The notes under the pieces were generated by a model. The model saw only the letters and a list, made by a program, of their open reading frames with translations. It had not been told where the DNA came from and searched no databases. A DNA stretch of 64,000 nucleotides, taken from contig NW_004797336.1 of assembly GCF_000002075.1 (NCBI RefSeq), positions 34,315 to 98,314 of the forward strand, read 5' to 3'. This document shows, in pieces, positions 14,901 through 61,779 of this stretch (position 1 is the first letter of the stretch; each line of letters opens with the position of its first letter). Origin of the DNA: Aplysia californica (taxonomy: Eukaryota). Made by a program: the position numbers and the translations under genes.

Positions 14901-17900
14901 AATCCCAGTGTGAATAATAATATGTATTCACATAACAAATCGAAAAAAATTCAAATGCGTCTAATCATCATCATCATTGCCTTTCTCACCCACCACCAGG
15001 ATATAGGCCGCGAACTAACACTTTCCACCTTTCTCTATCCTGGGCTAGCCTCTTGGTGTTATTTCATGTCTTCCCACTTTTCCTACTTTTCTGTACATCC
15101 AAAATGCGTCCAATGCTGTGTCAGTAATCAATAACAGCAGCACAGCATTCAGCTAGACCTCCTCTTCTTCTTCTTCTTTTTCTCCTCCTCCTCCTCCTCC
15201 TTCTTCTTTTTTTCGTCTTCTTCTGTTTCTGCTACTACTGCTAGAGCACTTCCCTGTTAGATCTAAAATAGACGATAGCAGGTTCTTCACCTTACAGTAT
15301 AATTTTATCCTGCTGGTAAGTAGGCAGTGTCCTTCTCATGCCAGGCAGACATATTTGATTACACACACCAAGAGACACGCCAGGCTCTCTATAAAAAGAC
15401 CTATAAGCCAGTGGAGTTCTCACTTGACAATGTCCATAATTCAGAGGTGTTAACTGGATATACACCCAAAAAAATCATACACTTTTCAGATCCCATGGAA
15501 ACGGGGACTCAGATTTCATAGATCATTTTGCCAAATGCATCTCGTATCAAGATTACTTTTATATATAAAGTGCAACTACTTCTCAATGATCAGCCTGAAA
15601 TCAGGCAAAAATTCCAAAGAATCTCAGGAATCTGGGTTTTCAGATTTATTCAGAAGTTCGGCACCTCTGGTAAGTTTGTCCCACCGAGAGAGTACCTGTC
15701 CACAGTGCGGGCACGTGAAGCCCGACTCCTGACTCTGGTGCGTGCGCTGGTGTTCCTTGAGCATGAATTTGGTGTGGCATTCCTTGTCACAGATGTCGCA
15801 GCGGTTGCTGCTCCAGCCAGGAGGAAGCGGCATGCCGTGTTTGAAGTAGCGGTGGTAGTGCAGGTAGTAGGCCCTCCCTACCGTGCTGTGGTAGCCACAC
15901 AGTTCGCAACTCTAAATGAAAGGGGAACAGCAGTTTCGTTTGAGTTTTAGTAAAGGTTTTACAGCGCTTGCAAGTTGCAACTGTATAAGGTCATACGAGA
16001 GCCAAGGGGTGGATGTCAACAGAGAAGTCCTTACAGGGAATCAGATTTACTCTGCTCACCTCTCTAGCTTCATCAGCACAAAGTCTGCTTCAACTATCAA
16101 GGCACCCCGGAAATAGTGGGTCCCAAAAGAGTGACAAACATACAAAAGACGTAGAGGAAAATGACAATAGTAAGGATTAGGAAAGAAAAAGCAGCAGTTC
16201 CCTGTTGCAGTTCAGGCATAGTTATGAGCGTGACATGATGAATCAGCCCATTTACAATTCTACTGCGCTTGAACGAGAAATGTCTCTCCTTTGGGAATGG
16301 CCTAAAGACACTACAGTCAGTGGCACTGCCCCGGGGGGCAAAGGCACTTCAAGAGGATAACAAACACAAAAAAGGAGGAGAGATAAGGACGATAGATGTT
16401 CGACAGGAAAGAAGGAGCAAAACATACCAGAGCACCTGCCAACACGTGGATGCAATACAATTATTCCCCCCACCGAGCCTACAGGGGGGCAAGACACCTA
16501 ATCCCACACAAATTTACTGGGAAGACAGATGTTACATGAACCTTGAACAATCCACCCTAAAAAACCCACCAGATCAGGACTTTAGCTTTAGTAAGAGTTT
16601 TACGGCACTTGCAACACAATTAGGTCATATAAGTGCCGAAGATTAGAGGTGTTACAAGAGAGTAACAAACACAAAAAAAGAAGGAGGAGAGATAAGGACA
16701 ATAGATGTCTGATAGGAAAGAAGCAAACCACACTAGAGCACCTGCCAACCAACCGCAGATCAGGACTACAACAACAGTCATTTTCACCTGAGAAACATCC
16801 TTCCCTTGGCCTATTGTCACCTGCTCCAGCACACAGTCTGGCTCTGTGCCATGATTCAACACGTGCTTGATGGTGCGCCGCGCACTCTTCACCACAGCCT
16901 GACATAGCTTGCAGATGAAATGATTCCTCTGGGGCTTGTCAGACTTGGATCGCTTTAAACAAAAAACAAACAAAAAAGGAAAAGAGATAAATTTAACACA
17001 ATGGTATTAAGTTGTGAAAGATAATAACAGTGTTTTACTCCACCATCAGCTTGGAAGGACGGCTCAGGACAGAGATAAATGGAAGGAGCTTGTTTGTGGC
17101 TGCCAGGGGTGAAAGGCATTGATGATGATGATGACTCCACCATCAATTAAGTTTAAGTCATTAAAAAGGCAGGCACCTTCAATCATTCTTGCCAAGGCAC
17201 TTGAAAAAAAAAAAAGAAATACTTGACAAAATACTTTCCCTATATTGGGAAATCAAACTTATTTCCTTTTCTTTTCATAACCTACTGAAAACATAATTCA
17301 TTTAACAATTTTAATTTGTGACGTTACTCTCACTTTTCACCACTTCTAGATTTAGATCAAATACTAGAAAACTAGTAGCATATACCACACAAATGTCTTG
17401 TAAACAGAATGAAAACAAATATACTTTACAAAATAGCCTGCCACTCTCAATGGTCTGCCTAGCTATGCAGATTGTACAGTACAGTAAGGTGACAACAGAC
17501 ATCATGTGCACTTTTACTAGGAGATCAACAATTAATTACTTAGCCTTGTGCAATGAGCCGACATTCAAAAACAGCATTTATTCGCCGTTCATTAGCAGAT
17601 TGCAAACATTCTCAGAAAAAAGAAAAAAATTAAAACACATCTGTCTGCCCCGCTCAATATCAGTTGTAAGACGCACTGAACTATTATCTGCTACGAGGCT
17701 CGAAAGGCAAAAAAGTGACTTTCCATGAAAATATTTGTTTTTTGGACATATTGAAAGTTTAATGTCTTCTTCTTCAATTAAGATAAAAATAAACCATAAT
17801 CTACCACAAATATTTTATTTTGATTTATTTTGGAGGTGAGTGTGGTTTGTTGTGAGCTTGGGTGACGAGATAAAGGAATTTGGACCTTGCTATTGCGTAG

Positions 17901-34210: not shown

Positions 34211-34659
34211 CAGTTAGTTTTGTCACAGTGATCGTTTGGAAAATGTACTGAAATAGCAGGCAGGTTTGCAGGGTACATCAAAGACAAATCTATGGCAGCT
34301 AGCAGCTAGCCCGAGAGTTAAAACTATAATATAAGCCTAAGCATGTATAGTGGTAGGGAAATATAGCTTTTTTGAGAGCATCCAAGCAAAGGAATGAAAG
34401 GAGAACCATGATCGCTGAGGTATGTCGCAGATCTGGCCCTGAACGATGATGATGTGTATAGTGGGCGATAAGCTTTAGCAGCAGGACTCATTTTTATCAA
34501 GCAAAACATCTATAGGAGCCAAGCCAATATATTGCAGAATTTTTCCCTAATGAAAGAAATTATATAGGCCAATATGAGTCACGGCGAGATGGAATCAGGC
34601 GCTCGTTAATTTTTGGGCATATGGGGTTATTCTGTTATTGGTATAATCTTTTTTTTTTA

Positions 34660-35570: not shown

Positions 35571-35640
35571 AATATAATATATATATTATAGACATATCTA
35601 GATTCTATAGAAAGAGATCTAGATCTATATATCACTAGCC

Positions 35641-35827
35641 TAGCCGCGTGATTCAACCGACTAAGTGCCAAGAGACAAATTTTTCAGGAGAAGCAAAAAA
35701 CTTTTATTTCTTTATTTTGGTATCTATGAATCTAAAATTCAGATATATGATATAATATGATGTAGGACGATGGTCTGTAACTAACATTTTTTTAAAAATA
35801 GCTTTCTTACATAAAAGAGAGGGAGTA

Positions 35828-35884
<57 letters not shown>

Positions 35885-37224
35885 CAAACAGATAGACAGA
35901 CAGACAGAGAGGGAGAGAGAGGACAGAGGGAAACTGGAGAATGAGTAGTTTTGGTGAAAATTAAACCCATTATTCCTTTAATTATACGGTGATATTATTT
36001 TTTTTTTCAGATCTATAGTGACGAAGTAATGTATCTCTGCGTCTACTTGTTTATTAGAATTATGTTAACTTAAGCCAAAGTCTTACAGTTTATGGCCAAG
36101 GGAGGCAGGGGAGTAGCCTAAAATATGTGACAGAAATCACAGGCTTCCTCCTACTTTGTTTTAAAGGCCTTGTAACCCAGTGAAACAGACGGTACTACAT
36201 TTTCTCATGACATGACAGCATCCCTGAGCATCACCGTGACGTGGCAGCAACTACCGCGCGTAATTGTTTTCTGACCCCGTGCGGGGCGATGCGCAAAACA
36301 ATGCATTGTTGTTATGGAGCGCGCCACGAGTGACATCTGTTATGTAAATCCTCTCAGGTTGAATACAAACTCATTGTTTTGAATATAGGTAGAATGTATG
36401 AGATTTGTTTCAAATTGAAATGTAGAGCTGAGGAGTTGAAGTTGAAGGTTTGTTGAAGAGAGAATTTTCGGGGGCGAAAGTGTTATGAGTTGCTTTTCCT
36501 TCACTTTATATATTTGACAAATTAAGTATCATCTACCCGGCACTGATTAACTTTCATCTCAGTGATTCAAGAATGGTACAGGACAGACACCGCAAGGGGC
36601 ACACACTTAAAGTAAATTAAGAAGCGTAAAAAGTCGAAATAAAAAATATTTTCTAATATTAGTTGTACCGGATGTGAAGCGCCCCTTAGCTGATCATTAT
36701 AGACTTTTTTTAAAATTCATTCGTCAGTAGCTTTTGCCACAATTTACTGACTTGGTCAAGTCAGATTCTTTGATGCCATCTTGTCCTTTCATAAGTACAC
36801 TACCAAACCTACTGTTCATGGATTACACAAATTGCCTTGACAAAATCTTCTGGCTATCGATAGGGTTTGATCTGAGTCAAAGTTAACAAAGGCAGCTCTT
36901 TGTTTTGATGTTATTACCCTCCGGTCTGTTTGACAAAGGCCACAGTCGTGTGGATCACTCTGCCTATGCGACAGGGGAACACCTCAACAAGCCGCTGAAT
37001 CTGCGAGATTCATCCACCCTTTCGCCACCATGAGGCTGCAAAACTGGCACGTTGGCCGGTTGAATCACATGGAAATTGGGGACTAGTGTGAGGCTAGGCA
37101 ATTTAATCTTTCAAACTCAAGGTTTTAACAAAAGGTGTATCAAAGGCAGTACTACATTAAAATAAAGGGATTAAAAAGTGATTTTCGAAAAATTTGTCAC
37201 TTGGGTGGTTGAATCACGCGGCTA
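35641..37224. mobile_element. Non-autonomous DNA transposon with TAG...CTA termini (Academ-like)
   Basis: Perfect 18-bp TIR TAGCCGCGTGATTCAACC / GGTTGAATCACGCGGCTA, extending imperfectly to GACAAATTTTTC; flanks GCC / GCG. Confidence 0.65.
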
Positions 37225-37228
37225 GCGA

Positions 37229-37938
37229 TAGATCTATTCTAGATCTAGATTTTACAATCTAGATCTAGATAACTAGATAGAATCTAGATCTAGATTAGTC
37301 TAGATATTTATAACATTATAATCTTATCTGACTTGAGATTTGCAAAGCTCGTGATCTAGATCTACTAGGTCTTGCATGCAGACAGTTCACAGCACCATGA
37401 CAACAGGCCAATAAGAAAGATGCAATCAAGAAAAGTATCTTTAATCCTTAGGCTAAGTCAGCCTTAGGTTAGGTTACAGGGACAACAACCTCTATTATAA
37501 AAGAGGGTTATTGTTCAGTAAATTATTTGGAAAGGCATCATTATATCACTCCAGGAATTCAGACATTGAACGCCTAGACCCAGAATCTAGATAGATCTAG
37601 ATAGATCTAAAATATCTAATCTAACATATCTAGTAATCTAGACTAGAGATCTAGAATCTAGACTAGATCTAGCTAGATCTAGAATCTAGTCTAGATCTAG
37701 ATCTAGAATCTAGTCTAGATCTAGATCTAGATAGAATCTAGTCTAGATCTAGATCTAGATAGATCTATCTAGATCTAGAAATCTATATAGATCTAGATCT
37801 AGATCTAGATCTAGATATAGATCTAGATTTTATATCTAGATTCCAGATGAGCTCGTCTGGTGAAAGACCTGGCCTGGTAGTGGTAGATTTCTAGTCTTAG
37901 ATCTAGATTATAGATCTAGATCTAGATTAGCTTAGATC
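37229..37938. repeat. Irregular palindromic (TAGATC)n array; smaller blocks at 35590-35630, 38865-38985, 41036-41060, 52304-52315, 52914-53004
   Basis: Direct inspection: TAGATCTA units mixed with TAGAATCTA, TAGTCTA, TAGACTA, TAGATA, TATCTA and TAGCTA. Confidence 0.9.
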
Positions 37939-38574: not shown

Positions 38575-38598
38575 AGTGAGAGAGAAAGAGAGAGAGAT

Positions 38599-38637
<39 letters not shown>

Positions 38638-38730
38638 GAGAGATCAAGAGAGAGGAGAGATACTAGAGAGACAGCGAAATAGAGAGAGAGAGACAGCGAA
38701 ATAGAGAGAGAGAGACAGCGAAATAGAGAG
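38575..38730. repeat. (GA)n microsatellite with three copies of AGAGACAGCGAAATAGAGAG
   Basis: Direct inspection. Confidence 0.85.
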
Positions 38731-40298
38731 GGTGACAGCTCGATTGAAATTATGACATATATTAATTGTTCTTTTTTTCAAATTGTCTTTGTCTTATTGA
38801 TTCCTCCAAATCCAAAACGCAGGAAAAACGATCGTTCATCGAAAAGACATCCGCAATCTTCATATAGATCTAGATCTAGAACTAGACCTAGGCCTCCAAA
38901 GTAGCTATGATTTATGTCTGTCTGTCTAGCCTACTAACAATACTGTCTAGATCTAGACCTAGATCTAGGTCATATAGATCTAGACTTCGTGACTTTGTTC
39001 CCGCCGCGGATACCGGGTAGCCTGGGGTCTGTATCTTTGTTACTGTCTACACTCCCCAGAATCCCTTTAAAAAATAATAAATAAGCTGAACAATAAGCCA
39101 TATGGCTCAAGTGTAAACATATTATATTTCTTGCTTACAATAAGAAAAAAGCTAGATCATCTAATTCCCATCTGTAGTGTTAATATAATTATTTTCTTTG
39201 AAAAAAGTAAAAAGAATGAATAAGTAAGAGTAGAAGAGCTGGCTGATAACTCCGAATTTGAGAGCCTGGGTACGATTGCGAAGTTTCTTCAAAATGTTAC
39301 TGTGCATCATCAAAAAGTATTCCAGAGAGTTAAATCAAGATGGTATTATAACGGGAATGCCCTGCTACTGTTTCAGGAAATAATACATATTACATAATAC
39401 AGCTCAATATAATACTAATACAGTGTATAATAGTATTATTGATCTACATGATGTAGCTATTCACTATTCAATTTTACATTTAGATGGTTGACTTGGGTGC
39501 CTATTGTTCTCAATAGTTCTCATGTTGTTCACTTGTTCGGTGGTAATGATGGAGGAAATTTAAAAGTTTGAGATAAACAAAATTAAAAGAGTTCTAAAAC
39601 TGGGTGTATACATTCAAAGGCCGAAAAGTCCTTTCATAATCGAGCCCAGCAATAGCGATACATGTAATCGATGTCATTTCTTAACTGTCAAAGATAGTAA
39701 CATAACATCTGTTAACCCCACAGAATTCTGTGGTTAACCCAGATACCTATTTCTTCTACAAAATATGTCGTGCTTTTCTTCAAAGTCCAAGAAGATCATT
39801 TACGTGTTTTTAAAGAAATCTCTTTATTTAATCTAGAACCTTAACAAGTGCCAATATACCAGACTGATACATACTATTAAGTCATAGACTAGGTAAGAAA
39901 TAATGGCAACTGTAAAATCGACTAAAGACCCTACGTGGTTTTATGTACTTCAGGAGGCATTACGACCCCAAAAAATCTGGAATTATCCTTCTTCCGGACA
40001 ACGTGGTGGTTCACCTTTGACCGTGACCCAAAATGTCATGATATGGCCAATCAAAGTGCGTGAAAAGCAAAACAGAACCCCACCACGTAGTTCATGGACT
40101 GCTAGGCCTAGGCCTAGGCCTATTTGACCCATTTTGTGTTGTGGCTACGAAAACAGAATCTAATCTTGTGCATCTTGTCTCTGAAGCGAATACGTGGCCA
40201 TATTTTTGGAAATTCTAATTCTCATTGTAACCTGTACACTGCAGTGTTGTGATTTTAGTATCTCCAAGAAGTACTGTAATAGTTTTGAATCATCAATC

Positions 40299-40520
40299 AT
40301 GGCTTCTAGTGGAGACGATAAGTATCTTGATGAATTTGACAAATACAACATCGAGCAGGGCAAGTACGAGAACCATGCCCACAGTGGCAAGGGCCGGTCG
40401 AAAAAGGAAGCAGAACAACATCATCACGAAGACCCAAGTGGTCACACGAGGAAGGATGTTCAAAAGTTGGTAAACAACGCGCACAAGCAAGCAGATGAAA
40501 ATAAAAAGAAAGCTAACTGA
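40299..40520 (+). CDS. NUPR1: Nuclear protein 1 (p8/NUPR1) family stress protein, 73 aa
   Basis: YLDEFDKYNI...SGKGRSKKEAEQH...PSGHTRKDVQKLVN matches the p8 family pattern (human LDESDLY...RKGRTKREAAAN...PGGHERKLVTKLQN); Kozak context atcATGG. Confidence 0.9.
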   Translation: MASSGDDKYLDEFDKYNIEQGKYENHAHSGKGRSKKEAEQHHHEDPSGHTRKDVQKLVNNAHKQADENKKKAN

Positions 40521-40766: not shown

Positions 40767-42941
40767 AAAGAAAGAAGATCTCAACTGCAAGTTGAGGAAG
40801 ACAAAATTAATGTTTTTCTCTGATTCTGCCCAGTATCGGTTATATTGTCAGGATTGTGATCTCAGATCTGGCTTAAAAGAGCAATTTTTTGTGTGGAAAG
40901 GCTCAACTCTCATTATATTACTCTTGCTTTGACACTGGACAAGGTAAACGTTCCATTCTAATCCAACTTTCCATCTTATTATCAATACCAGCGGTCATGA
41001 TGGTAGTGATTTATTTATTTTGCTACTGATAATACTAGAGATATCTAGAATCTAGATCTATTACTGTTACTTTCTATAATTTTTGTAAAAATATAAATTC
41101 TCATATGAGAGGAGTTCCTCAGAGGGCCGGGACTCACCGTGACAAGGTTCTCTGAACAAACTTCTATACAAGAGTTAAGGTTAGGGTTAGGTGTTGTTGG
41201 TTGGCCGGCCCTCTGCGGAACTCCTTCCCTCTTATTTTTCATTATCGTGGTTTACTCGAATAGATGCATCATACAAGTTTGTCAATCCCCGAAATTTTCA
41301 AGATTAAGTCTGTGCTCTATTGTATTTTTTTTTTTTTCTTTGGTTTTCATTGTTCGGCAAAGCCAAAAGTGTACCGGTAATCACGGATAGCTTGAATTCA
41401 TCGGGATGGGCCTTGATTGTTTGGGGGATATTTTACAAAGATAAAGAAAAAAAACTGAACCACAGGCACAGGTGGACTGATGGGTGATTTTGAGTCTTCT
41501 GTGTTCGACTTATCCGTGTTATGCTGTAAGTGTGCACGGCTGGAAGATCAAGGAACTGAATAGTTCACCATTTTTGCACTTTTTTTCTGACATATTTTTC
41601 TGTTAAGTCATCAGTCTGATTGGAAATGTAATTCCTTAAGCTGGTGCTAATATTAGCTCTGTCCCTACAGTGCGCACCTTTCCCCCCCACCCACATTATT
41701 CCACCAGGTTTTTTCCAATCAATGCTTAAAAAAGAACAGAGATTTGATCATGCTATTTGCCTCTTTAAACCACCATCTGCCAAAACTGTCTTGAGTTGAA
41801 TGGTCTTTATTTAATTAATTAATGTAAGTTTGCTTACCAACGATAACCTCCAAGTCTCCCACATTCAACTCCGAGAGCTAGTGATCATTGAAGTCAAACA
41901 TACGTTTGGGTGAAGGGAAATAACTCACAATATAATATTACCCTTCATCTAGTCACGACAGAATAATTTCCCTTGACATATTGGTCAGTCAGCACTATAA
42001 AAAAAGCAGAGGGCAGTATTACAATCCTGTATACTGCCAGCCCCACTATATCAACTTCATACTCATCCAAAGTTTTGCGGTAAAAATTCCTTTTGGCTGT
42101 ACTCTCTTCCCCTCTTCAACCCATCTCTCTGTGTTCCCACAAATTGTGACAAATCAACTGCTCGGTGTGAGATTCCATTATAGGCCTTCTTCACTTTTCA
42201 AAATGACGTGTATGGTGGAGTCTTACACTCTAAGCGGTATAATGTTCTCATGTGTGTATTGGTATTACTCAGGATTTCTCATTTACCAGATGTTTGTTTG
42301 TGATGTGAATGTTCTGAGTCTCTCATTGATGTCTTTATGGTGTAGCAGTTGAGGGCTTTTCACCTTGCATGCAGAAGATGCAGATCGCGTTACACCTTGG
42401 AAGAATATTTTGTTTTGATCTCCATCCTTCTATTGGAAAATGATATCCCATACGCCAGGTTTGGCAATGACTTACAATATACGGCAGCCTGCCTCATGAT
42501 GTAAATTGTTTTTGAGGGGTGTAAAACATAAATTTACAATCAAGTTTGGTAGGCTATTCGGAGAGGCAGTCCCATTCCATTTCAAAGAGTGCCAGAAGCC
42601 TGAAGACCTTTGTTTGTCTGTTATCAAGTGTCAGTTTTCTTTTTACTGCAGTGAACCGTGATCAGGCAAGAGGAATTTAAGCCTTGAAATTACATGCCTT
42701 CAAAAATATGAACAGAGGTTATCTCATTCCTTCTGACATTTGAAATGGAAGAGATTAGTGTTGAATACGTCCAGAGTATTGCGGGGGGGGGGGGGGGGGG
42801 GCAGCGTGCGATGATACATGCTTACTATCAGATCTAATACTGTACTGTTGTTATTATACCCATATAATGTTTTGTTCTAGACCTTGATCTAAGTTCTAAC
42901 ATGGTACATAATTACAATTTTTTTTTTTATCTTTGTTTCAG

Positions 42942-43620: not shown

Positions 43621-44639
43621 AGTGGGAATTCATAGCCTTTTTTTTTTTATTCATGTAGCCTATACGTTGTGGGGGGTTTTTCTCCTCCATCAACACAATT
43701 TAGACTTAGTTCATCAATAGTTTTTGCTACAGAGACAATAGCCAGTAGTTATGGTTGAGGGCTACAGAGCTACAAATTCACAATTGGGCAAATAACTTTT
43801 CCTTTTCTTTGACTTTACTGAGAGATCTGTCATTACTTGTACTTAATCACGTGACTTCCTTTAAAGTCTTTTACGAGAACAATGATACTGGGCTGCAATG
43901 CAGATGATCCTGGTTTGAATCCGAAACAGGACTTCCTGAATTTGAATTGAGTGATAAAATTTCTGGCTCTCTGTCTGCTTGGGTATGTCACTACCCTAGA
44001 ATTACAAAGTTCTAGATCCATCCCCTCGAGTTCAGAGAAATTTAACGTGAAAAATGTTGAGTTTCACATCATATCTAGTTTTTTCTAATGCAATTTTTGG
44101 AAAATCTGAATAAAATCTTAATAGCTCGGAATTAACGATTTTGATAGAGGGATCTAGAAATTGTTTTCTGACTTCATACATGGCCTTTGTAACTCAAACT
44201 GAAAACAGCCAAATAAAGGGAACTGCTGCTTTTTCTTTCCTCTTCCTCACAGTCACTGTCATCATTTTTTCTCTTCTTTTGTATACATGTTTGTCACTGT
44301 CTTGTGAACTGCTATTTCCGGGGTGCCTTGACTTGATACATGTAGTCTGTTGAGGCTAGAGAGGTGAGCAGAGTAGATCCAGAGAGTCTGTAGCTCTCTG
44401 GTAATCTAAGCCTGATTCCCCCTTTAGACTTCTCTGTTGACATCCACCCCTTGGCACTCATATGACCTTTTATGCAGTTACGAACGCCGTAAAATCTTAC
44501 TTAGATCTAAAATGAAAATTTTTGAAACGGCCAAAAATGTCAAAGATAGAACTTCGTGTTCTAAGGTAGCGATTTGTCTGTCAGTATCAGAGTGTCAGAG
44601 ATGGAAGTGAAATTTGAAGTCCTGCATTGACGATCTTAA

Positions 44640-45746: not shown

Positions 45747-47660
45747 CATCATCATCATCATCAATGCCTTTCACCCCTGGCAGGGTATAGGCCACATACA
45801 AGCTCCTTCCATTTATCTCTGTCCTGAGCCATCCTTCCAAGCTCGTTCCAAGTAAGCTTCATTTCTCTCGTCCCTTTCCACGTATCTCCTCCATGTTTCC
45901 CGTGGCCTACCCCTGCCTCGTGCTCCCTGGGGGTTCCACTGCAGTGACTGTCTTGTGCTGTTTCCGCTGGGCTTTCTTAAGGTGTGTCCCATCCATCGCC
46001 ACTTTCTTAGTCCTATTTCTACTTCTATATCCTTTTGTCCTGTCCTTTCCCACAGCTCTTCATTTCTTATTCTATCTTGCCACTTAATTCTTAAAATACT
46101 CCTCATACATCTGTTGATGAAAGTCTGGACCTTATTCAGTACTGTCTTCGTTGTCTTCCAAGTTTCGCAGCCGTGGAGGAGCACAGACTTGACGTTGGAG
46201 TTAAAGAGTCGAATCTTGGTGCGTAGTGAGATGTTGTTTGCTTTCCAGACTTTTGATAATTGCTTGAAGGCTGACCTTGCCTTGGCGGTTCTTGCTTTAA
46301 CATCTGCCTCGGTTCCACCTTTACCATCGATGACACTTCCAAGGTAGGTAAAGGAGTCCACTTCTTCAAGGGGAGTGTCTTCCACTGTCACAGCAAGGTT
46401 TGAAACTTTTCCTAGCTTCACTACTTTTGACTTGCCTGGATGTATACGTAGTCCAACACTCCTTGATAGGCTGTTGAGTTCCTTGGTCTTTTCTTGCATC
46501 TGAGCATGTGTGTGAGAGAGCAGTGCAAGGCCATCAGCGAAGTCCAAGTCGTCCAGCTGCTGCCAACGGATCCATTGTATTCCATTACGTTTGCCTCTGG
46601 TGGCTTCTTTCATGACCCAGTCAATTGCCAGTATGAAGAGAAAAGGTGAGAGCAAGCATCCTTGTCGCACTCCTGTCTGTACCCGGAATGGTTCTGAGAG
46701 TTGTCCTTCGTGGAAGACCTGGCAGCTTGTTCCATCATAGGTGGGCTTCACAAGCTTGAAGATTTTCTCAGGCATTCCAAAATGCCCCATGAGTTTCCAC
46801 AGAGTTTCCCTGTCCACGCTGTCAAACGCCTTTTCATAGTCAATGAAATTGACCACGAGTGGTGAATTCCATTCAAGCGATTGCTCAACAATGATACGTA
46901 GAGTAGCGATCTGGTCCACACATGATCGGTTTTTGCGGAATCCTGCCTGGTTTCCTCGAAGCTTCTCATCCGTTGCCAGCTTGATTCTCTCAAGGAGTAT
47001 CCTGTTGAAGACTTTCCCGGGTATGGAAAGGAGTGTAATGTCTCTGTAGTTGTTACAGTTGCTGATGTCTCCTTTCTTTGGCAGCTTGATTAGGTGGCCT
47101 TCCTTCCAATCTGATGGTATTTCCTCCTTTTGCCAAACTTTTTCAAATAGAGCATATAGAATTTCCACAAACGTATCGTTCTCTGCCTTAAGGGCTTCCG
47201 GTGGTATATGGTCGGGACCAGCTACCTTGTGGGACTTCAGTGTTTTTATAGCGGCTGCAATTTCCTCTCTTGAAGGTGGTTCCGTGTCTATTGGGAGGTC
47301 ATTTCTGGCTGGAAGAATTTCTGGTTGGTTTTCTGGAGGTGGTCTGTTCAGTAGTAGATCAAAGTGTTCTCTCCATCGGTTAAGTTGCCCCTCTGGGTTG
47401 AAGATAGTCTTTCCTTCTTTGTCTTTCACTGGTAGAGTGGGCTTGCTGAACCTACCTGAAAGAGTTCTTGTAGTCTGGTGTACAATCCTCAAGTTCCCGT
47501 TTGTTGCTGCTTTCTCTGCCTTTTCGGCCAGGCCATTCAGGTAGGTATTCTTGTCCTTCTTGATGGAATTCTTTACCTCCCGGTTTACTTCGGTGTACTC
47601 ATGTTGTGCAGCGAGTTTCTCAGTTCGATTGGTACATGCCCAGGATATTATGTGGTTCAT
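45747..47660 (-). mobile_element. RTE-clade LINE, 5'-truncated, with a long RT ORF (45813-47660, 615 aa) carrying a mutated catalytic motif
   Basis: LIKLPKKGDISNCNNYRDITLLSIPGKVF, NQAGFRKNRSCVDQIATLR, FIDYEKAFDSV, GVRQGCLLSPFLF, LDFADGLAL, FTYLGS, WRWMGHTLR, RGRGRPRETW; (TGA)n tail. Confidence 0.93.
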
Positions 47661-51828: not shown

Positions 51829-53320
51829 ATTATTGACTAATTTCTGGAATGATCGATCGGAAGGTAAGCCTGTTTAGGCTGGGGAAGTAGCTCCTCTATA
51901 GAACTGCTATGTAGCAACAAGTTATACTTGTAGTCCGTTGGAGTCCACTCTCGACGGGTTTATGTCACCAGAATTACCGCTTACTTTGTCCAGGGTTTGG
52001 TAAATGTAGATGATAATAATNNNNNNNNNNNNNNNNNNNNNNNNNNNNNNNNNNNNNNNNNNNNNNNNNNNNNNNNNNNNNNNNNNNNNNNNNNNNNNNN
52101 NNNNNNNNNNNNNNNNNNNNNNNNNNNNNNNNNNNNNNNNNNNNNNNNNNNNNNNGAAGCTGCTAGTGCAGGAAAGGGAAGAAATTAGGTGAAAGTGTTC
52201 GTGGCCAATACAAAACAATTATACATCATGTAGAATACTGTGATGATGATGCAAAATGTCGTAGGCCCATCGGCCTAGACTCCTCAAAATAGAATAAATA
52301 AGCTAGATCTAGATATTTATAAGGGAACGGTTTTCAAAGTGAAAGACACGATCTGGCCGATAGATCCACTCCACAATGATCGAGACACCAGAAAACAGAA
52401 ACGTAGGACGTAGCAGCATTTAGATTTTACGTCATATAGGCAAACATTCTTTTTTTTTTTTTTTTTTAGTCATCGTTGGATTATCAGAATTCGTTTGAGG
52501 GACTAGTAGCAGGTGTTCCCAGTTACAAGCAAATTTTGAGTTCGAATCTGATTGTTGTTGGAATTATGCTTAACTTTATTAAACATGGGAGCCTTACAGT
52601 GGGCCCCGATATGGGCCTTGTATGGAAATTAATTATTTTTCATAGGACTTTTTGTGTAATTTGTGCAGTCCTTTGTGATTGTTTAAAAAGAGAAAAAGAG
52701 CAGACCTGCACGTGTCGTGACCGTAGCATGACGATGTATTATGTATTAATATTATATCAATGTACATGTACTTAAATTGCCAACACCTGGAAATAGTTAG
52801 ATTGGCCTTCCTGGTACTCTGAGTAGGTCTAGTCAAGATTCGAAGGGGGCGGGGGTTAATTACCAGTGCAAAGTTTTGAATATCTCTAGTCGAGGATGCA
52901 TAGAGTTTCGTCTTGATCTAGATTTCTTCTAGAATCTAGATCTAGGTGCGGCCGGAATTAAACGTGAGAAAGTAAACAGTTGCCAGTAATAACACGTAGA
53001 TCTAACACTGTTTGCTGTAGTGTTGACAATTAATTATTACTACTACGATAAGTATAACAGTATGGTGTTATTTCAAAACGAACGTGGGAAAGGGGAGGGA
53101 TTTTTTTGGGTTTTTTTGGGGGGGGGGCATGGAAGAAGTTGTGAAGATTAACAAATAAAGGTAATTATGAAACCCCAGTATAGGCTTAGTAAAAAGAGAA
53201 AAGCAGAATCAAACACACTGCCCTACTCGATGAAGCCATGCAACGAAATTCAGTGTTTGTTTTTGTTTCGGGGTCACCACTGGGTCAATTCGAGCAAGTT
53301 GTGTCCCTTCACCAGGGTAA

Positions 53321-53371
53321 CGGAAGTGCCACGTGTGTCGCTGTCATCAAACAGTAGTAAAGATGGCGGCC
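53321..53371 (+). promoter_or_regulatory. Housekeeping-type proximal promoter/5' leader of SCFD1: ETS (CGGAAGTG), E-box (CACGTG), YY1 (AAGATGGCGGC overlapping the ATG)
   Basis: Motifs at 53321-53328, 53330-53335 and 53360-53370, immediately before or over the start codon. Confidence 0.6.
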
Positions 53372-55276
53372 ACCTTGTTGGAAAAGCAAATAGCAGCCCT
53401 AAAGCGTATGCTCAACTTCAATTTACCACAAACTAAAGCCACAAACGCCGAACCACAATGGAAGGTTCTAATTTACGACAGGTTTGGGCAAGACATCATT
53501 TCGCCTCTTCTGACTGTGAAAGAATTGCGAGATATGGGTGTAACGTTGCATTTGACGCTTCACTCGGATCGAGATCCGATACCAGACGTTCCTGCTATTT
53601 ACTTTGTGATGCCCACCGATGATAATATCCAGCGCATTTGTAGAGACTTTCAGAACCAACTTTACGAGTCATACTATCTCAACTTCATTTCTGCAATTTC
53701 AAGGCAAAAACTGGAGGACATTGCCCAGGCTGCGTTGCAAGCAAATGCAGTTCAACAAGTCTCAAAAGTTTTTGATCAGAATTTGAATTTCATTTCGCTT
53801 GAAGATGAACTGTTTACTCTACGCCACCAAGACAGAGACTCAATTTCATACTATGCCATCAGCAAAGGGGATGTTAAGGACACTGAAATGGAAGCGATCA
53901 TGGATAGCATTGTGGATAGCTTGTTTTCAGTTTTTGTGACACTAAGTGTAGTGCCAATTATTCGTTGCCCAAGAGGCAATGCTGCTGAAATGGTTGCAGA
54001 AAAATTAGATAAAAAGCTTCGAAAAAATCTGATAGATACCAGAAACAGCCTGTTTGCATCTGATGGTGTCCCTGGACAATTCAGCTTCCAAAGACCACTT
54101 CTTGTCATTTTAGATAGGAACATAGATTTGGCAACCATGCTTCATCATACATGGACTTATCAGGCGCTGAGTCATGATGTTTTAGATTTAAAATTGAATC
54201 GTGTGGAGATTGAAGAAATAATTGATGAGGGACCAAGTGCAAATTCTCCAACAAGAAAACCTAGGACAAAGAAAAAGACTTACGATCTTTCATCTAAAGA
54301 CAAGTTTTGGGTAAGTCAGAAGGGCAACCCTTTCCCCGAAGTGGCTGAGGCAGTGCAGGAAGAGTTAAATGCTTACAGACAGGAAGAGGGGGAGGTTAAG
54401 AAACTGAAAGCTGCTTTAGGCCTTAAAGGTGAAGATGATGCAGCTATAAGCATGCTGTCTGACAATACTGCTCGTCTTACGTCTGCTGTCACTTCTCTTC
54501 CAGAACTGTTAGAAAAAAAGCGCCTGATTGATATGCACATGAATATTGCCACTGCTCTCCTTGATCAGATTAAAGCACGGAAATTAGATTCGTACTTTGA
54601 AACAGAGGAGAAAATGATGAGTAAAGCTACTCTGAACAAATCCTTGATGGACATGATATCTGATCCTGAAGCTGGTAAACCAGAAGACAAAGTTCGTTTG
54701 TTCATCATTGCTATGATCTGTGGACCACCCATGTCTGAGGCAGAAATTGATCAGTACTGCGTAGCCCTTCAAGCGGCAAACTGTGACATATCATCTGTCC
54801 AGTACGTCCGTCGTTGGAAGTCATACTCGAAACTTCAGGCCCCTGCCAGCCAGTACACGGGTGGCGGCATCAGCTCGACTAGCATGTTCTCAGGACTTCT
54901 CTCTAAAGGTTCTCAGTTTGTCATGGAAGGTGTGAAAAATTTAGTTGTGAAAGGTCACAATCTGCCCACCACTCGAATCGTCGATGCTCTGATGGAGTTG
55001 AAATCTTTGCCTGATGTTGAAGATTACCTGTACTTTGACCCGAAACTGCTTCGAGCAGATGCTTCGTCTACACCTCGCAACAAATCTCCTTTCCAGGAAG
55101 CCTATGTTTTTGTTGTTGGTGGAGGAAACTATATTGAATTTCAGAATCTAATGGATTATGTTCGCTCAAAGGCCACACCAACAATGCAGAAGAAGATTGT
55201 GTACGGTTGTAGTGACCTTGTGAATGCTGCTCAATTTTTGAAACAGCTCTCTCACTTGGGACAAGAAATGTCATAA
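53363..55276 (+). CDS. SCFD1: Sec1 family domain-containing protein 1 (Sly1 homolog), 637 aa, intronless
   Basis: Uninterrupted ORF with Sly1/SCFD1 motifs: ALKRMLNFN, WKVLIYDRFGQDIISPLLTVKELRDMGVTLH, VPIIRCPRGNAAEMVA, RPLLVILDRNIDLATMLHHTWTYQAL, LPELLEKKRLIDMHMNIAT, VFVVGGGNYIEFQNL. Confidence 0.96.
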   Translation: MAATLLEKQIAALKRMLNFNLPQTKATNAEPQWKVLIYDRFGQDIISPLLTVKELRDMGVTLHLTLHSDRDPIPDVPAIYFVMPTDDNIQRICRDFQNQLYESYYLNFISAISRQKLEDIAQAALQANAVQQVSKVFDQNLNFISLEDELFTLRHQDRDSISYYAISKGDVKDTEMEAIMDSIVDSLFSVFVTLSVVPIIRCPRGNAAEMVAEKLDKKLRKNLIDTRNSLFASDGVPGQFSFQRPLLVILDRNIDLATMLHHTWTYQALSHDVLDLKLNRVEIEEIIDEGPSANSPTRKPRTKKKTYDLSSKDKFWVSQKGNPFPEVAEAVQEELNAYRQEEGEVKKLKAALGLKGEDDAAISMLSDNTARLTSAVTSLPELLEKKRLIDMHMNIATALLDQIKARKLDSYFETEEKMMSKATLNKSLMDMISDPEAGKPEDKVRLFIIAMICGPPMSEAEIDQYCVALQAANCDISSVQYVRRWKSYSKLQAPASQYTGGGISSTSMFSGLLSKGSQFVMEGVKNLVVKGHNLPTTRIVDALMELKSLPDVEDYLYFDPKLLRADASSTPRNKSPFQEAYVFVVGGGNYIEFQNLMDYVRSKATPTMQKKIVYGCSDLVNAAQFLKQLSHLGQEMS

Positions 55277-55911
55277 TTTTTTCTTTTCTTTTCAATTTCA
55301 CAAAAACACCAGTTCCATTAGCTGTGGAGAATTTGTCACTCCTTTTTTTAGTCATGAAAGCGGCTAATGTGAAAGAATTGAGTTGAAATTACTGGGCTGG
55401 GTTGTTGTTTTTGGGTTGTTTGTTTTTTTTGTTCTATGAACTGTTTTTGTTTGAGAATTTATATTATAATGTCATTTTTAATTTTTGTTGCCGTTGCACT
55501 CTTCAATAGAACAGATAGTTTAGGCTACCATGTTCACTTCTTCTTATAAAAATAGGGTTGTGCTTGAAGAAAGACTGAATGTATATGATGAGGAATCAGG
55601 GGTCGCTTAATTTGAATACGGTAGAATTTTCAGATTTCAATCTCTCACCTTTTTTCACTAACCCCCATTTTTGTTTTCTACTAGCTTTAAAAATGTTTTG
55701 TTGTGTGGTTAAATTTAAATGAGTATTCTGTGTGTGTACATATGCTTCAAAGGGGTTGGGGTGTTGAATATAATGTCTGCACATGACTGTCTGACTCATA
55801 CTTTAAGTGGACTACACTTTTCAAATTAAATATTGTGTGTGTGAAATCATAAATTACTTTAACTATAATAGTTGTAATGGTTTTGGTCATCAACCCGGTG
55901 GCTCACAAGTA

Positions 55912-56887
55912 CAGTATTCTCCACATAAACGCACTCTCCGCTCGAACGCACGCTTTTGACAGATGGGTATTTTACTTTATAATTAAGACGTTTAAATGCA
56001 CGTTCACTCCTTCTAAACGCACACTCTGATCCGCGGAACACACCGACAGGTAAAACTTGACAGGGGGAAATTCTCACTACAACCTGCACAGCTTGCATTA
56101 TAAGACAAGTCTAGAAAACTGGATATTTCACGAGACTGCCCCTCACACCGAACAAAGAGCAGGTGTGGATAGCGTTTTCACACCCGACTTTCCACCGACA
56201 CATAGGTGTAGGACTGGTCGGTGAAATGTTGGGGGACTGAAATGTTTTTGATTGGTCACTGGAAATTAATCTTTGAGAGAAGGTTTCTGACTGTTGTGTG
56301 GGTGACTGCATGTAATGTTTAGTTAGGCCTAGACGTAGGCCTATGATGTGCAACGCACGTGAATACTGTAATACACTAGAGAGCCTAGAAGGATTAAAGA
56401 TAGTCAAGTAGCCTAATCAGCTGCTTTCGAAGAACTCATCTTGTTCAACGAATCACAATAGGAAAGTTTCACTGAATGTAGAGATCTATGATTCTGATGT
56501 CGTCCATGAATTTACGAGTGAGGGCGGTCGCTTGGAAAGCCATGTGGCTGGGCCGTTGTCTCTATGACTATCACCAACAGTTTTCTTTTAGGCTATTTGT
56601 TCCCGACATTTTATGGTGCATTCATTGCATTGAATCTGTCTTTCTTACCCCCCACCCATTCAATAGCTGTATTCTTAACCGCAGTCGTGGAATCCGTCAC
56701 GAAAGAGTCACGAGTCGTCACATTATCGGCCAGTGACCCCATCCCATAGGGGGGTCACTAAAATATCAAGGCAATAAGATGAATGCGTCCCTTTCTCCCT
56801 TTGCAAAGGTTCATGTAAACGCACGCTCAGTATAAACACACGCTAAGGAACCCTCCCGAGCCCTGTGCGTTTAGGCGGAGACAACTG
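55912..56887. mobile_element. pogo/Tigger-like MITE, copy 1
   Basis: TA|CAGTATTCTCCACATAAACGCAC...GTGCGTTTAGGCGGAGACAACTG|TA; colinear with copy 2. Confidence 0.8.
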
Positions 56888-58006
56888 TAATTCTTGTGTG
56901 CGAGACAAACGAGTGTCGATTTCAACCGTCTTGATTGAAGAGACGTTAAAAATAAAGTGTGTAGTCTTGGCCCTGTATGTTTCTGGAGGCCCTTTTCATC
57001 ATGTGATGAAATTATTGCCAAATTTGATGATTGTATTAATTATTAAGTTTTGTATGTGACGGGAGACAATGACATGCATGTTTGTCACATTGTTGTAAAT
57101 GTCACTGCCTTACTCTTACCTGACATAGCTGTATTAGAGTTCTGTCTATTCAACTATATTTTTCTCATGATATAAAGCCTGCCCATCTGCAGGAATTTTT
57201 TGTCACCTTTTGTGATCTTTGCTTTTCTCAAACCACCTTTCTTGCAAAGTACAAAAGACCTATTTTATGTAATCTCAGTTTTGTCGGACTAGTACTAGTA
57301 TTACTGTGCAAGCAGGTCAAGAGCTGTCTTTGTGGGATACAACAACTTTTGCTGCATCTTGCCTTTGCTCTTGGTAGGTTTGGAAAATGAAGTGTGCGTT
57401 CAGTAGCAGAAACCTGCACTGAGAGATGCAAATTTTTATAAGGAGATTAATAAAGTCTACCATCCATAGAGCACAGTGTGCTTATTTTTAAATTACGAAT
57501 CATACTTTCAGGAAAAGGCTTGTGTATTGAAAAGTACTCGTAACGTCCTTACAGTGTACATGATTTGTGTCCATTTGCTTCCGTTTTATGTCTATTTTTT
57601 TGTAGGTCAGATGATCCAAGACAACATGCCTTGGCTGCATGTTGTATTTTTTTCTTCACAAAACAATTGTAAATTTGCTGGAAATGGGCAGGTGTGTGAC
57701 AATTTTAAATAGGAATGCCTTACTTTTTATTCACCCTTTTGGATAGTTACGCTACCATGTCAGTCTCGTATTAAATTTGATAGAAACTTTGAAGCGAAAA
57801 GTTATTTATTGTCCAATGGGAACAAAATGTTGGCCCTGGACTGTAATGAGATTCTTTCACAGTGTAACAAGTGTTTCAATTCATCTTCTCAACTTGTCAT
57901 AGGTTATTTTTTACTAGATAAAGGTTCTTGATTCATGTTTCATGTTAATTTCTATTTTTTAAAAAGATTTGATGATTTAGCTGATATAGTGTGAGAGATT
58001 ATCATA

Positions 58007-58865
58007 CAGTAGTCTCCACCTAAATGCACGCCATACAAAAGCACACTCCGCTCATACGCTCGTTTTCGTCATCTGACATGTTTTTGACTATATAATTTGG
58101 ACGTACAAACGCATGACCACTCTCTCTAAACGCTGGCTCCGATCTTCGAAACACGCCGACAGGTAAAGCTTGACTAAGGGAAATTTTCACTATGTACAAC
58201 AAGCCTAGAAAACCGGATATTTGGCGAGACTGCCCCTTACGTCGAACAAAGAGTGATGGACAGCGTTTTCCCACCCTACTTTCCACAGACACATAGGTCT
58301 AGGACTCTCTTAGACTTGTCGGTGAAATGTTGGGGGGTTGGGAGACTGAAACGTTATTTGATTGGTCACTGGAAATGCATCTCTTTTGAGAGAAGGTTTA
58401 TGACTGGTGTTTGAGTGACTGCATGTTGGTTAATGTTTAGTTAGACCTAAGCCTATGATGCGCAACACGCATGAATGCTCGTTCATGAAATTACGGTCGG
58501 GGGTGGTCGCTTGGAAAGCCATGTGGCTGGGCTGTCATCTCTATGACTATCACCAACAATTTCTTTTCAGGCTATTGGTTCCTGACATCTTATTGTTCCT
58601 TCATTACATCAAGTCTGTCTTTCTGCCCCCCCCACACACACACACACCCATTCAACGCTTTTGTTTTCTTAACCGCAGTCAGGGAATCTTTTACAAAACA
58701 GTCACTTGTCACATTATCGGCCAAAGTGACCCCCACCCCAAAGGGAGGTAACTAGTATATCAAGGCATTGAGATGACTGCGTCCCTTCCTCCCTTTTGCT
58801 AAGGTTCATGTAAACGCACGCTATGGAGCCCTCCCGAGCACCGTGTATTTAGGCGGAGACTACTG
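58007..58865. mobile_element. pogo/Tigger-like MITE, copy 2 (solo terminus also at 63205-63221)
   Basis: TA|CAGTAGTCTCCACCTAAATGCACG...CGTGTATTTAGGCGGAGACTACTG|TA. Confidence 0.8.
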
Positions 58866-61779
58866 TAGTTATTACTGAAAGTTATGTGTCTGTTGGTGGG
58901 TAAGACAAAGTGTGAATCCTTTGTACATTAGTGGGAGATTCTGCATTGTTTTACATGATGGAATCACGTACATACCTATTTATCTGTGTCACACATAAAA
59001 AATTAGGGTTTTTTTTCTTTTCCTGTGTAAGTACTACTATTGTCCCTGGACCAAGCAACGCAACTTCTAATTGACCTTTTTTTGTGACTGTTGTTAAAGT
59101 CATTAGAATATTCAAAAGTACACATAGTTTTAGTTTTATCACAATTTCATTGAGTTGCAATGGAAATTCAAGCTAGTTCAGAATTATGTGTTTTCATAAA
59201 GGCTATTGTCCAAACCTTTTATGGGCAACTAAGAACCGCTGTACCAGTTAATTAATTTGCTAACGTCAACAGAGAACTTTTGTTGTTTTTCTTAAATTAA
59301 ACAAGTCAATTTTGACTTAAAGCAGTGTGTAAAATCTAAGTCTGCCTGGTGGGTTTTCCTTTCTTGAGAGTGTTTGTCGCAAATGGAATGCTGGGTGTAT
59401 GGTTCTCGAAGTTGTCATAGTTTTCATTTAAAATTGAGAGAGCGTGTTCAGAGGCAAGATAACATAAGAGATGGCTACGTATTGGGTACAGTGGCCTCTG
59501 CCACAATGTACAGTGCTGCACAGTAGTATTTATCATATATATATATGTGTGTGTGCGTGTTATTATTATCTGTTAACAAGTGTGTCACGACATGGTGGAA
59601 TCAGGCACTCGTCAATGTTTTGGCACATATGGGTTTATTGGTATTCTAAAGCCTGTTAATTTGTGTTCCTTATGGGGGGAAAAAAATCCATAAAATATTA
59701 TAAATATGTCATAAAATCTTAAATAGAAATATTGAAATAAATGTCATTGAAGGAGGTCAGGGTCGCCTGGTTTCAGAGGTAAAATCAGCTAGAAAATGGC
59801 CGCCAAAGTTTGGTAACTTCCATAGCCTTAGACTTAGAGTCCTTGGAAACTGAAAATTTACATTTTTTGTGCCTTTAATCAATTTTTTTCAATAATGTCC
59901 ACACAGAAATGATTTCTTTATTTTGAAGAGCGCCGGATTTCACAACGATACCTCACAATTGTATCAATAATAATTGTTATTTATGAGGGATGAAATGTTT
60001 GGAAAGGATTTAGTGTACTCAAATATCCAGCTGTTTTTATTGTGATGTTACACGACTGAGTTGACTCTTTTAGGATTTATTTCTTAATTTTTTAATTCCA
60101 ACTGATTTTACAGAATTAAGTAAGACAGCGGAGTCCACTTAAACAGAAATCTGCGGAGCTTCCTGATTTCCTCAGGTTTAGCTGGGTTTGGGTTATAAGA
60201 AAGAGACTATAGAGGGTGCTAGAATAGATTAATAAGAAACGAACAAGTTTTTTTTTCTTCTTTTGGTTTACCTGTTTGCTGATGAATTGTATTCGGTTTA
60301 AGCAGACTCCACTGTTTACATAAAGTATTTGAGAAAAGGGACAGTTCCTTTAATTATACTTACATATGAGTACCAGTTGTATAGTGTATAGAGAATCGAT
60401 TTCACAAGAATTATTTCGACAATGTTGTTTTTTAAAATGTGTACGAGTATGCAGAGACAATTAGAATATTCTCTTGCAATCTTCGCTTCACAAGAGAATG
60501 TTAGGAGAGCGGTGTTAGATTTTTTTTCTCTCTTTCCTGTGTTCAGGAATGGAATCTTCTCGTTCTATAATTGGATTTTCATTTTTCGGTCATAGGTGTA
60601 AAATATGCATTTCAGGGGAAAGAATCGAACAAAAACGTGATGCAAGTGGTGTTGTCTTTCGACTCTTCATCATTGTTATGTGATTGTGCTTTTCGCTGGT
60701 TTATTTTGCTCACTCTTCAGCTGAATGTATTATTTTGCTTGGAATAGATTTATTGTGACATCTTATGTAGGCCAACAGAAATTCATTGGCTTTTTAAAAT
60801 GTTTTTGGAAGGAAAAGTAGGTTTCTGTAGTTCAGTGTATTGGATGATTACCTACTTAAATTGCCAGAGCTTTAGTTGAGGGTGATTCATTTATTAAATG
60901 TGTATTTTTGTTCATTTTGAAATGTACATTGTTTAGTAAACAAATGATTAACTTCATTTTATTGCTACTGTTACCGTAGCACAACAGCATTTCATCACAT
61001 TGGTTCTTCATCCAAGTCAAGTTTTGTTTCTTAAAAAAATATAGTCTTTTTTGTTTGGTTCTAAAGTCTGTTTTCTATGAACTGTCTGCAAGAGGAATCT
61101 TCTACATGCCCTTACACTACACATACTGATATAATGTTAACTCAGTATGAATCCGGGCTTGTTATACTCTTTTTCTAAAATACCAGCCCGAAAAGAATAT
61201 ATGGGCTACTGGGGATTGAGAAATGCCCTTTGTTGCTTGACACTCAATACTCTCTGACATCCATATGTTTGAAACAAGTGTGATGTCTCTTTCCCCTTTT
61301 CTTTTCTTGTGACTGTCAGTCTCTTTATTTTGGTGCACAGTCACAGGTTGGACAATTCATTTATTCACCAGTCTTTTGCCTTGATTAATGATTTTGATGT
61401 CCTTTGAGTTCTACTTTCTGGACTTGTGGTGAAGTTGTAGGTCAATACCTTGGTCAACTCAAGTTAACTGGGCAAGTTTTAGAGTAAATGTGATATCATG
61501 TGTAAACATTTGTGTGGCATTGTTTAACGAGTGAGTGAAAGAGAAAAGTACCGGTAGTAGTCCTACTGTTATTGTATGTTTTAGAACTGATGTATTTAAA
61601 ATTTCTCATTTTCCGTTGCCAAGTGTCATCATGTGATATTGTTGACCACTTTGTGGTCTATAGTAATGTGATGGGGATTGTAGTAGCTGTATTTACCTCA
61701 AGTCATTTTGTTCACATTTTGTCAGCCACAGACATGGACAGCCTCAATGATGGCAATCCTTGTTAATGCTATTGTTAGA

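Follow-up and report, generated by a model that had tools for sequence, protein, structure and literature searches.

Genes and TAGATC arrays in the window

The window, i.e., the whole stretch of 64,000 nucleotides of Aplysia californica DNA analysed here, corresponds to positions 34315–98314 of its contig in an assembly of 927,310,431 bp and 4,332 contigs. Pfam identified a BTB domain in minus-strand exons between 25.7 and 31.9 kb, Phospho_p8 (NUPR1-like) at 40194–40517 on the plus strand and a complete Sec1 domain (SCFD1-like) in a single plus-strand frame at 53333–55273, in agreement with the gene names proposed in a preliminary description of this DNA. The Sec1-family frame (53333–55276, plus strand) encodes 647 aa and covers positions 1–575 of 575 of Pfam Sec1 without interruption; a whole protein of this family in one uninterrupted frame points to a retrocopy or a gene without introns. 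The minus strand between p8 and Sec1 has a 615-aa open frame (45816–47660) with RVT_1 and DUF6451, which represents a non-LTR retrotransposon copy.

Imperfect TAGATC blocks were found at the places named in the preliminary description (35597–35640, 37229–37938, 38865–38985, 41036–41060 and 52304–53004), and the TA-GATTC-TA unit mentioned there, TAGATTCTA, is located at 35599. The blocks, the element that interrupts one of them and the single units considered below are as follows:

35597–35640: left TAGATC-type block (TA-GATTC-TA, TAGATCTA and others), immediately left of the TA-flanked element
35641–37224: non-coding TA-flanked element of about 1,580 bp inside a TAGATC block, with 17/20 terminal inverted repeats starting GCCGCGTGATTC
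37229–37305: imperfect TAGATC array, 12.8 copies, 20% indels (Tandem Repeats Finder)
37575–37848: longest array, higher-order period of 24–28 bp (Tandem Repeats Finder and parse)
37890–37938: array block ending about 20 bp from a putative GTGAGT donor of the first BTB exon (about 37958, minus strand)
38865–38891 and 38946–38985: two blocks flanking 54 bp of unique DNA, between the BTB and p8/NUPR1 genes
40102–40122: (CTAGGC)3.5, a GGCC-type array (TA-GGCC-TA, three times)
41036–41060: short block of TA-TC-TA, TA-GAATC-TA and TA-GATC-TA, downstream of the p8 reading frame
44502–44509: single unit in a SINE tail, a plausible TA insertion with ambiguous alignment
52304–52316, 52917–52944 and 52997–53004: units upstream of the Sec1-family (SCFD1-like) frame 53333–55273
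56324–56331: single TA-GGCC-TA, a 6-bp insertion at TA relative to the paralogous CAGT-ended copy 58005–58867
62668–62675: single TA-GATC-TA, a derived 6-bp insertion at the consensus TA of a SINE copy

Tandem Repeats Finder reported period-6 TAGATC/AGATCT repeats at 37229–37305, 37647–37841, 37898–37938, 38865–38891 and 38946–38968, and periods of 28 and 72 for the longest array. According to the same program, indels made up 10–20% in the TAGATC arrays vs 0–5% in the CA, GA, AGAC and TA repeats of the window. When the window arrays were cut at every TA, the inner segments were GATC (47), none (9), GA/TC (9), GAC/GTC (8) and GAATC/GATTC (6), followed by a tail of rarer segments including GC, with unit lengths of 4–7 bp. 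This is a mixture of TA-delimited unit types rather than a clean satellite, as had been noted before. CATG units were nearly missing from this parse, and the order and spacing of units were irregular. From 37680 onward in the longest array, the block TA-GAATC, TA-GTC, TA-GATC, TA-GATC recurs, and the blocks at 38865–38985 consist of mixed units, one GGCC unit included. Counted over the window, TAGATCTA occurs 44 times. Single units are scattered over the window and multi-unit blocks are confined to gene 5′ regions, each lying at most about 2 kb from the BTB/p8 intergenic region or the region upstream of the Sec1 gene. Judged from the GTGAGT donor, the array at 37890–37938 would fit a position just inside the first BTB intron.

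Single units as new insertions at TA

Outside the window arrays, TAGATCTA was observed 10 times vs 0.65 expected under an order-3 Markov model, and TAGGCCTA eight times vs 0.58. All 256 palindromic 8-mers were ranked by over-representation in 20 random 10-kb pieces from contigs 1 and 2. The simple repeat TATATATA occurred 127 times there (6.91 expected), TAGATCTA 44 times (2.1 expected), TACATGTA 25 times (2.4 expected), TAGGCCTA 14 times (1.1 expected) and TACCGGTA seven times (0.6 expected). In a 318-kb sample consisting of the window, these pieces and 29 SINE flanks, TAGATCTA, TAGGCCTA, TACATGTA and TACCGGTA were the top non-simple words among all 8-mers, with observed vs expected numbers on both strands of 176 vs 6.9, 44 vs 3.4, 58 vs 7.2 and 22 vs 1.6, respectively. 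The density of the four main unit types in the sample was roughly one per 2.5 kb. Genome-wide, the pattern consisting of GATCTAGATCTAGA and 21 further positions, the last limited to three bases, was found about 16,000 times per strand.

The enrichment depends on TA. Among the 16 possible flanking dinucleotides, TA was the sole enriched duplication around GATC, CATG, GGCC and CCGG in the 318 kb, with 188 TA-flanked cases observed for GATC (8.0 expected), 74 for CATG (9.8 expected), 62 for GGCC (4.2 expected) and 22 for CCGG (2.1 expected), both strands included. The flanks of the isolated TAGATCTA sites (n=37) were unlike the repeat. The 7-mers TAGCCTA/TAGGCTA, i.e., the three-base footprint expected of GCC...GGC ends, were enriched about three-fold.

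A SINE-like family (length about 250 bp, CTAAAA-type tail, at least 5,768 candidate copies) worked well as a neutral reporter. Copies lie in the window at 62617–62870, 16110–16400 (minus strand) and 44218–44520, and in the sampled loci L022–L050. The window copy at 62668 reads CCTC-TAGATCTA-CTTC; in 30/30 other copies fetched, the unit is absent and a single TA is kept (CCTCTACTTC), which upholds the first of two before/after comparisons put forward earlier. For the second, at 44502, insertion at a TA is plausible but the alignment is ambiguous. Paralog pairs revealed the change from TA to TA-GGCC-TA at window position 56324, within a CAGT-ended element whose sister copy is 58005–58867, and from TA to TA-CCGG-TA at position 6059 of the sampled piece L002. 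Thus, a single TA is the empty state in the 30 other SINE copies, in both paralog pairs and in 7,567 genome copies that carry one exact 16-mer of the SINE consensus and are unmodified at site 1.

To count such events, we searched the genome for the SINE consensus flanks around TA, two to six free bases and TA, using patterns anchored on the SINE flanks from 62480–62900 with N in the variable part:

Site 1 (TTTCCTC-TA-CTTCTTT): 56 TA-x-TA matches vs 7,567 unmodified copies; inner CATG 13, GATC 9, GAATC/GATTC 3, CGG/CCG 3, GCC 2, CTG 2, GGCC 1, CCGG 1
Site 2: 51 matches, many of them local tandem duplications; CATG 4, GATC 2, GAATC 1
Site 3: 19 matches; GGCC 4, GATC 2, GCC 1
C-TA-G site: 12 matches; GATC 1
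Control with the GA dinucleotide duplicated instead of TA: 12 matches, each of them a local tandem duplication; the four palindromes were absent

Among 30 four-base inserts at site 1, 24 belonged to the four palindromes, and near variants occurred as well (CACATG, CATGTG, CATTG and AATC); the two-base forms CA, TG, GA and TC were absent from this site. Sites 2 and 3 and the C-TA-G site together yielded CATG 4, GATC 5 and GGCC 4, and all four reporter positions combined GATC 14 and CATG 17, numbers to which copies with one shared insertion could partly contribute by descent from a modified source copy. Four GATC-type SINE copies with visible downstream sequence (three singles and one doublet) all differed there. 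Reversed-pattern controls gave 0–1 matches. The GAATC/GATTC variants, too, arose as single new insertions at the reporter sites.

Because the same few inner sequences appear at different TAs and in different copies, and the non-TA control is free of palindromes, these results demonstrate repeated insertion at TA only: the single units arose anew as insertions specific to TA, and their inner sequences come from a small, fixed, self-complementary repertoire. The alignment of repeat copies, suggested previously as a way to detect gains from TA to TA-x-TA, thus uncovered derived insertions both at SINE sites and in paralog pairs, and the SINE-site approach is transferable to any genome with a high-copy repeat. 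A search for left junctions of an element inserted at SINE site 1 returned 416 matches, mostly due to chance given the short anchor. In the SINE alignment (consensus CTCATATGACC), insertions of 2–4 bp have a hot spot at the TA within CATATG, where 7/31 aligned copies carry small insertions that differ from each other.

An ordinary self-complementary hexanucleotide microsatellite evolving by slippage alone, with single units as decayed or nascent arrays, is a very unlikely account of these data. It is at odds with single units at TA sites that have unrelated flanks and no earlier repeat, with the strict TA dependence common to four inner sequences and with a non-TA control consisting of local duplications only. 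As the origin of single units, slippage alone is already contradicted; it would survive only as a mechanism of growth, on which the evidence in its favour bears (see below).

Transposon excision as a probable source of the units

In Tc1/mariner excision, cleavage of the non-transferred strand takes place a few bases into the element, and the break is repaired by end joining. In general, footprints are regarded as rare and difficult to detect. Those of Tc1/mariner elements comprise the TA duplication plus the first or last 2–4 bases of the element, such as TACAGTA/TACTGTA for Sleeping Beauty (PMC6943129); the Tc1 footprint is TATGTA/TACATA, and this four-base form is the usual one in C. elegans (PMC12632400).

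A 2+2 join of CA...TG ends would give TACATGTA, and the 318 kb contain seven TA-flanked inverted-repeat elements starting with CAGT, whose ends match the CATG unit. Two CAGT-ended, TA-flanked inverted-repeat copies of about 860–980 bp lie in the window (55910–56889 and 58005–58867), one of them carrying the derived TA-GGCC-TA unit at 56324. Candidate matches to the mariner transposase domain numbered at least 1,217 in the genome, and several had open frames of 319–383 aa. The family of the element at 35641–37224 comprises at least 157 candidate copies with 87–91% identity; TA-GCC-TA adjoins the element on the left and TA-GCGA-TA on the right. Its position within a TAGATC block shows that TA-targeting elements do land in arrays. 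This element also contains an (AGAC)20 repeat (window 35828–35908). Plausibly, CCGG units stem from CC-ended candidates and GCC/GGC units from elements of the 35641–37224 type.

The predicted source of the most frequent unit was not among the elements found. Three scans of differing stringency recovered no TA-flanked inverted-repeat elements starting with GA or GG in the 318 kb; if GA-ended elements stood in the same proportion to their footprints as the CAGT elements do, the sample should contain about 13 copies, GATC being the commonest unit. About 60 arrays were listed on contig 1; their flanks were diverse and had no recurring transposon end. Hence the TA element with GA(A)...(T)TC ends that the preliminary description had postulated was encountered neither in the 318 kb nor beside these arrays. 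The predicted footprints of resident GC..GC and GT..AC element types were not enriched.

The proposal that the units are Tc1/mariner-type footprints therefore stands in part: insertion is recurrent and TA-specific, and CATG matches the CAGT elements, but source elements of GATC and GGCC were not found in the 318 kb or beside the approximately 60 arrays. The identity of the inner bases is independent of the flanks, both in isolated units and at the SINE sites, which rules out hairpin-derived palindromic nucleotides and snap-back synthesis. On balance, the units are probably, though by no means certainly, excision footprints of TA-duplicating transposons.

Alternatively, a TA-specific process other than excision (an unknown nuclease or repair pathway, or a domesticated transposase) could add self-complementary hexamers, with arrays then growing by duplication. 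The missing GA...TC and GG...CC elements in the 318 kb and beside the approximately 60 arrays would fit such a process, as would the lack of CA, TG, GA and TC two-base forms at SINE site 1 and the dominance of the six-base 2+2 form vs the four-base form usual for Tc1 in C. elegans (PMC12632400). Nevertheless we regard it as unlikely: the independence of inner bases from flanks excludes palindromic hairpin nucleotides and snap-back synthesis as its mechanisms, inverted-repeat termini would be expected to yield just such a small fixed set of inner sequences, each joining two inverted ends, and CATG matches the abundant resident CAGT elements. We know of no process independent of transposons that adds such hexamers at TA.

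Compared with known Tc1/mariner footprints, the units are alike in that both TAs are kept with the outermost 2–3 end bases between them, in their variants with limited trimming and in their strict TA specificity, and the A. californica genome contains TA-duplicating elements as well as mariner transposase genes. Differences are the dominance of the six-base 2+2 form, the very high density, the tandem arrays and a GATC source element that was not found. A study of Stowaway MITEs in Triticeae reportedly deduced excision footprints from species comparisons, with the parent element known at the same locus. There, as here, footprints of TA-targeting elements were recovered by comparing the filled, empty and footprint states of related sequences; here, however, paralogous repeat copies provide the empty state, and the comparison does without a filled state.

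Our searches of the literature on motifs, genome-wide footprints and Aplysia californica transposons found no precedent for these observations. In a sample of this 927-Mb animal genome, words shaped like footprints are the most over-represented non-simple 8-mers, and they turn up repeatedly at the same neutral sites. Should the units be the work of transposons, they constitute a record of past cut-and-paste activity, countable family by family, and also supply new palindromic repeats beside genes. Should no transposon match GATC and GGCC, a TA-specific insertion process awaits discovery.

Array growth and the position of arrays beside genes

According to the SINE sites, the chance of a given TA gaining GATC is about 0.05–0.12%, from which second hits are expected in 0.1–0.24% of singles. 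Doublets were far more frequent: outside the window, the ratio of doublets to singles was 7:36 for GATC, 1/31 for CATG and 1/21 for GGCC, and counting the window 13/79 for GATC vs 1/36 for CATG. Same-type GATC doublets thus exceed independent second hits by about 70–160 times, and one doublet was found among the GATC copies at SINE site 1. Given this excess, one added TA per cycle is too weak a force for array growth. A preference for C-TA-G as the mechanism of self-seeding was not supported, with one GATC event at such a site vs nine at site 1. The idea that arrays seed themselves by gaining one TA target per cycle, part of the preliminary description, is therefore contradicted by the doublet excess and not supported by the site context. 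Stacking does occur, as chains of unlike units with a shared TA demonstrate (CATG-GATC twice and GGCC-CATG once in the 318 kb).

Duplication has left clear traces. Since a four-unit block is repeated in the longest array, its variant units are copies of one block and not separate events. At neutral sites CATG equals or exceeds GATC in frequency, yet the arrays contain almost none of it, so arrays are not a random pile of footprint types. Some arrays were spread by repeats: one dispersed family has an internal (TAGATC)2–3 between the conserved flanks AATAACCCTCC and GACAGCACACGAGTGAAC, with two vs three units between its copies (C1:448241, 629767, 702291, i.e., L003 2289, and 2034644). At C1:2,504,000–2,546,000, several members of a tandemly repeated gene-sized unit agree in the relative position of a TAGATC array (flank ...CTCTAGATGTTGTATCGTGTA); these arrays are inherited through segmental duplication, and their unit number has changed.

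The higher-order block repeats, the same-type doublet excess, the difference of two vs three units between copies of one repeat family and the 4,330 genome-wide occurrences of (CTAGAT)3CTAG are the points that speak for a plain microsatellite. Against it stand, in the arrays themselves, the chains of unlike units and an indel content 3–4 times that of other microsatellites in the window. Like hexanucleotide microsatellites and higher-order minisatellites, the arrays have head-to-tail units, change unit number between copies and, in the longest array, duplicate blocks; unlike them, they start from TA-specific insertion seeds, are self-complementary, have an unusually high indel content and mix unlike units. 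Arrays probably grow chiefly by duplication of units and blocks, with occasional addition of unlike units and insertion of elements.

We therefore lean, with modest confidence, towards an origin in two steps, in which footprints provide seeds that then grow by duplication. A seed would form when a six-base insertion turns a TA into TA, two bases, their reverse complement and TA. Genome-wide, this class would comprise the inner sequences GATC, CATG, GGCC and CCGG together with three- and five-base variants. In an excision of the Tc1/mariner type, both TA copies would stay behind, and end-joining repair would join the outermost 2–3 bases of each end. The seeds are observed to be new and specific to TA; transposons are their presumed makers. 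Slippage or unequal exchange, acting on a repeat that is self-complementary, would then duplicate units and multi-unit blocks in tandem, and this would be the main way in which seeds lengthen; TA-targeted insertions into the array and unlike units would join now and then.

Arrays are often paired around 50–300 bp of unique DNA. Such pairs were considered as ends of MITEs, a candidate rejected as the DNA between them is unique and unrelated between loci. Whatever the origin of the first unit, arrays might be selected cis-regulatory or chromatin elements, i.e., clusters of sites for palindrome-binding factors or boundaries of nucleosome-free regions, kept and enlarged at gene 5′ ends. The multi-unit blocks within about 2 kb of three gene 5′ regions in the window, the frequent pairs, the same relative array position in several members of the tandem gene cluster on contig 1 and the expansion of GATC beyond CATG are compatible with this explanation. 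However, single units are dispersed and also form at neutral SINE positions, unit order and spacing are irregular, and CpG observed/expected is at background level, so that we consider such selection quite unlikely. As a promoter proxy, CpG observed/expected around the arrays gave no signal above background, and Pfam searches of frames near array-rich random loci remained mostly blank. At one WD40 gene locus in the sample, units lie 0.8–1 kb upstream. Insertion bias for open chromatin, local instability and selection are candidate causes of the arrays at the gene 5′ ends of the window.

For the preferred origin from footprint seeds that grow by duplication, the stronger expansion of GATC than of CATG, which generic slippage would not lead one to expect, leaves room for family-specific return to own footprints or for selection at promoters. 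In a far-reaching version, the genome would preserve, like a fossil archive, some hundred thousand excisions or more, in which a rare or extinct GA...TC family preferentially re-entered its own footprints in chromatin open in the germline, and the promoter-side TAGATC arrays would largely be stacked footprints marking past germline accessibility; we hold this to be improbable. The BTB/p8 intergenic region additionally contains a long imperfect (GA)n tract at window positions 38578–38730.
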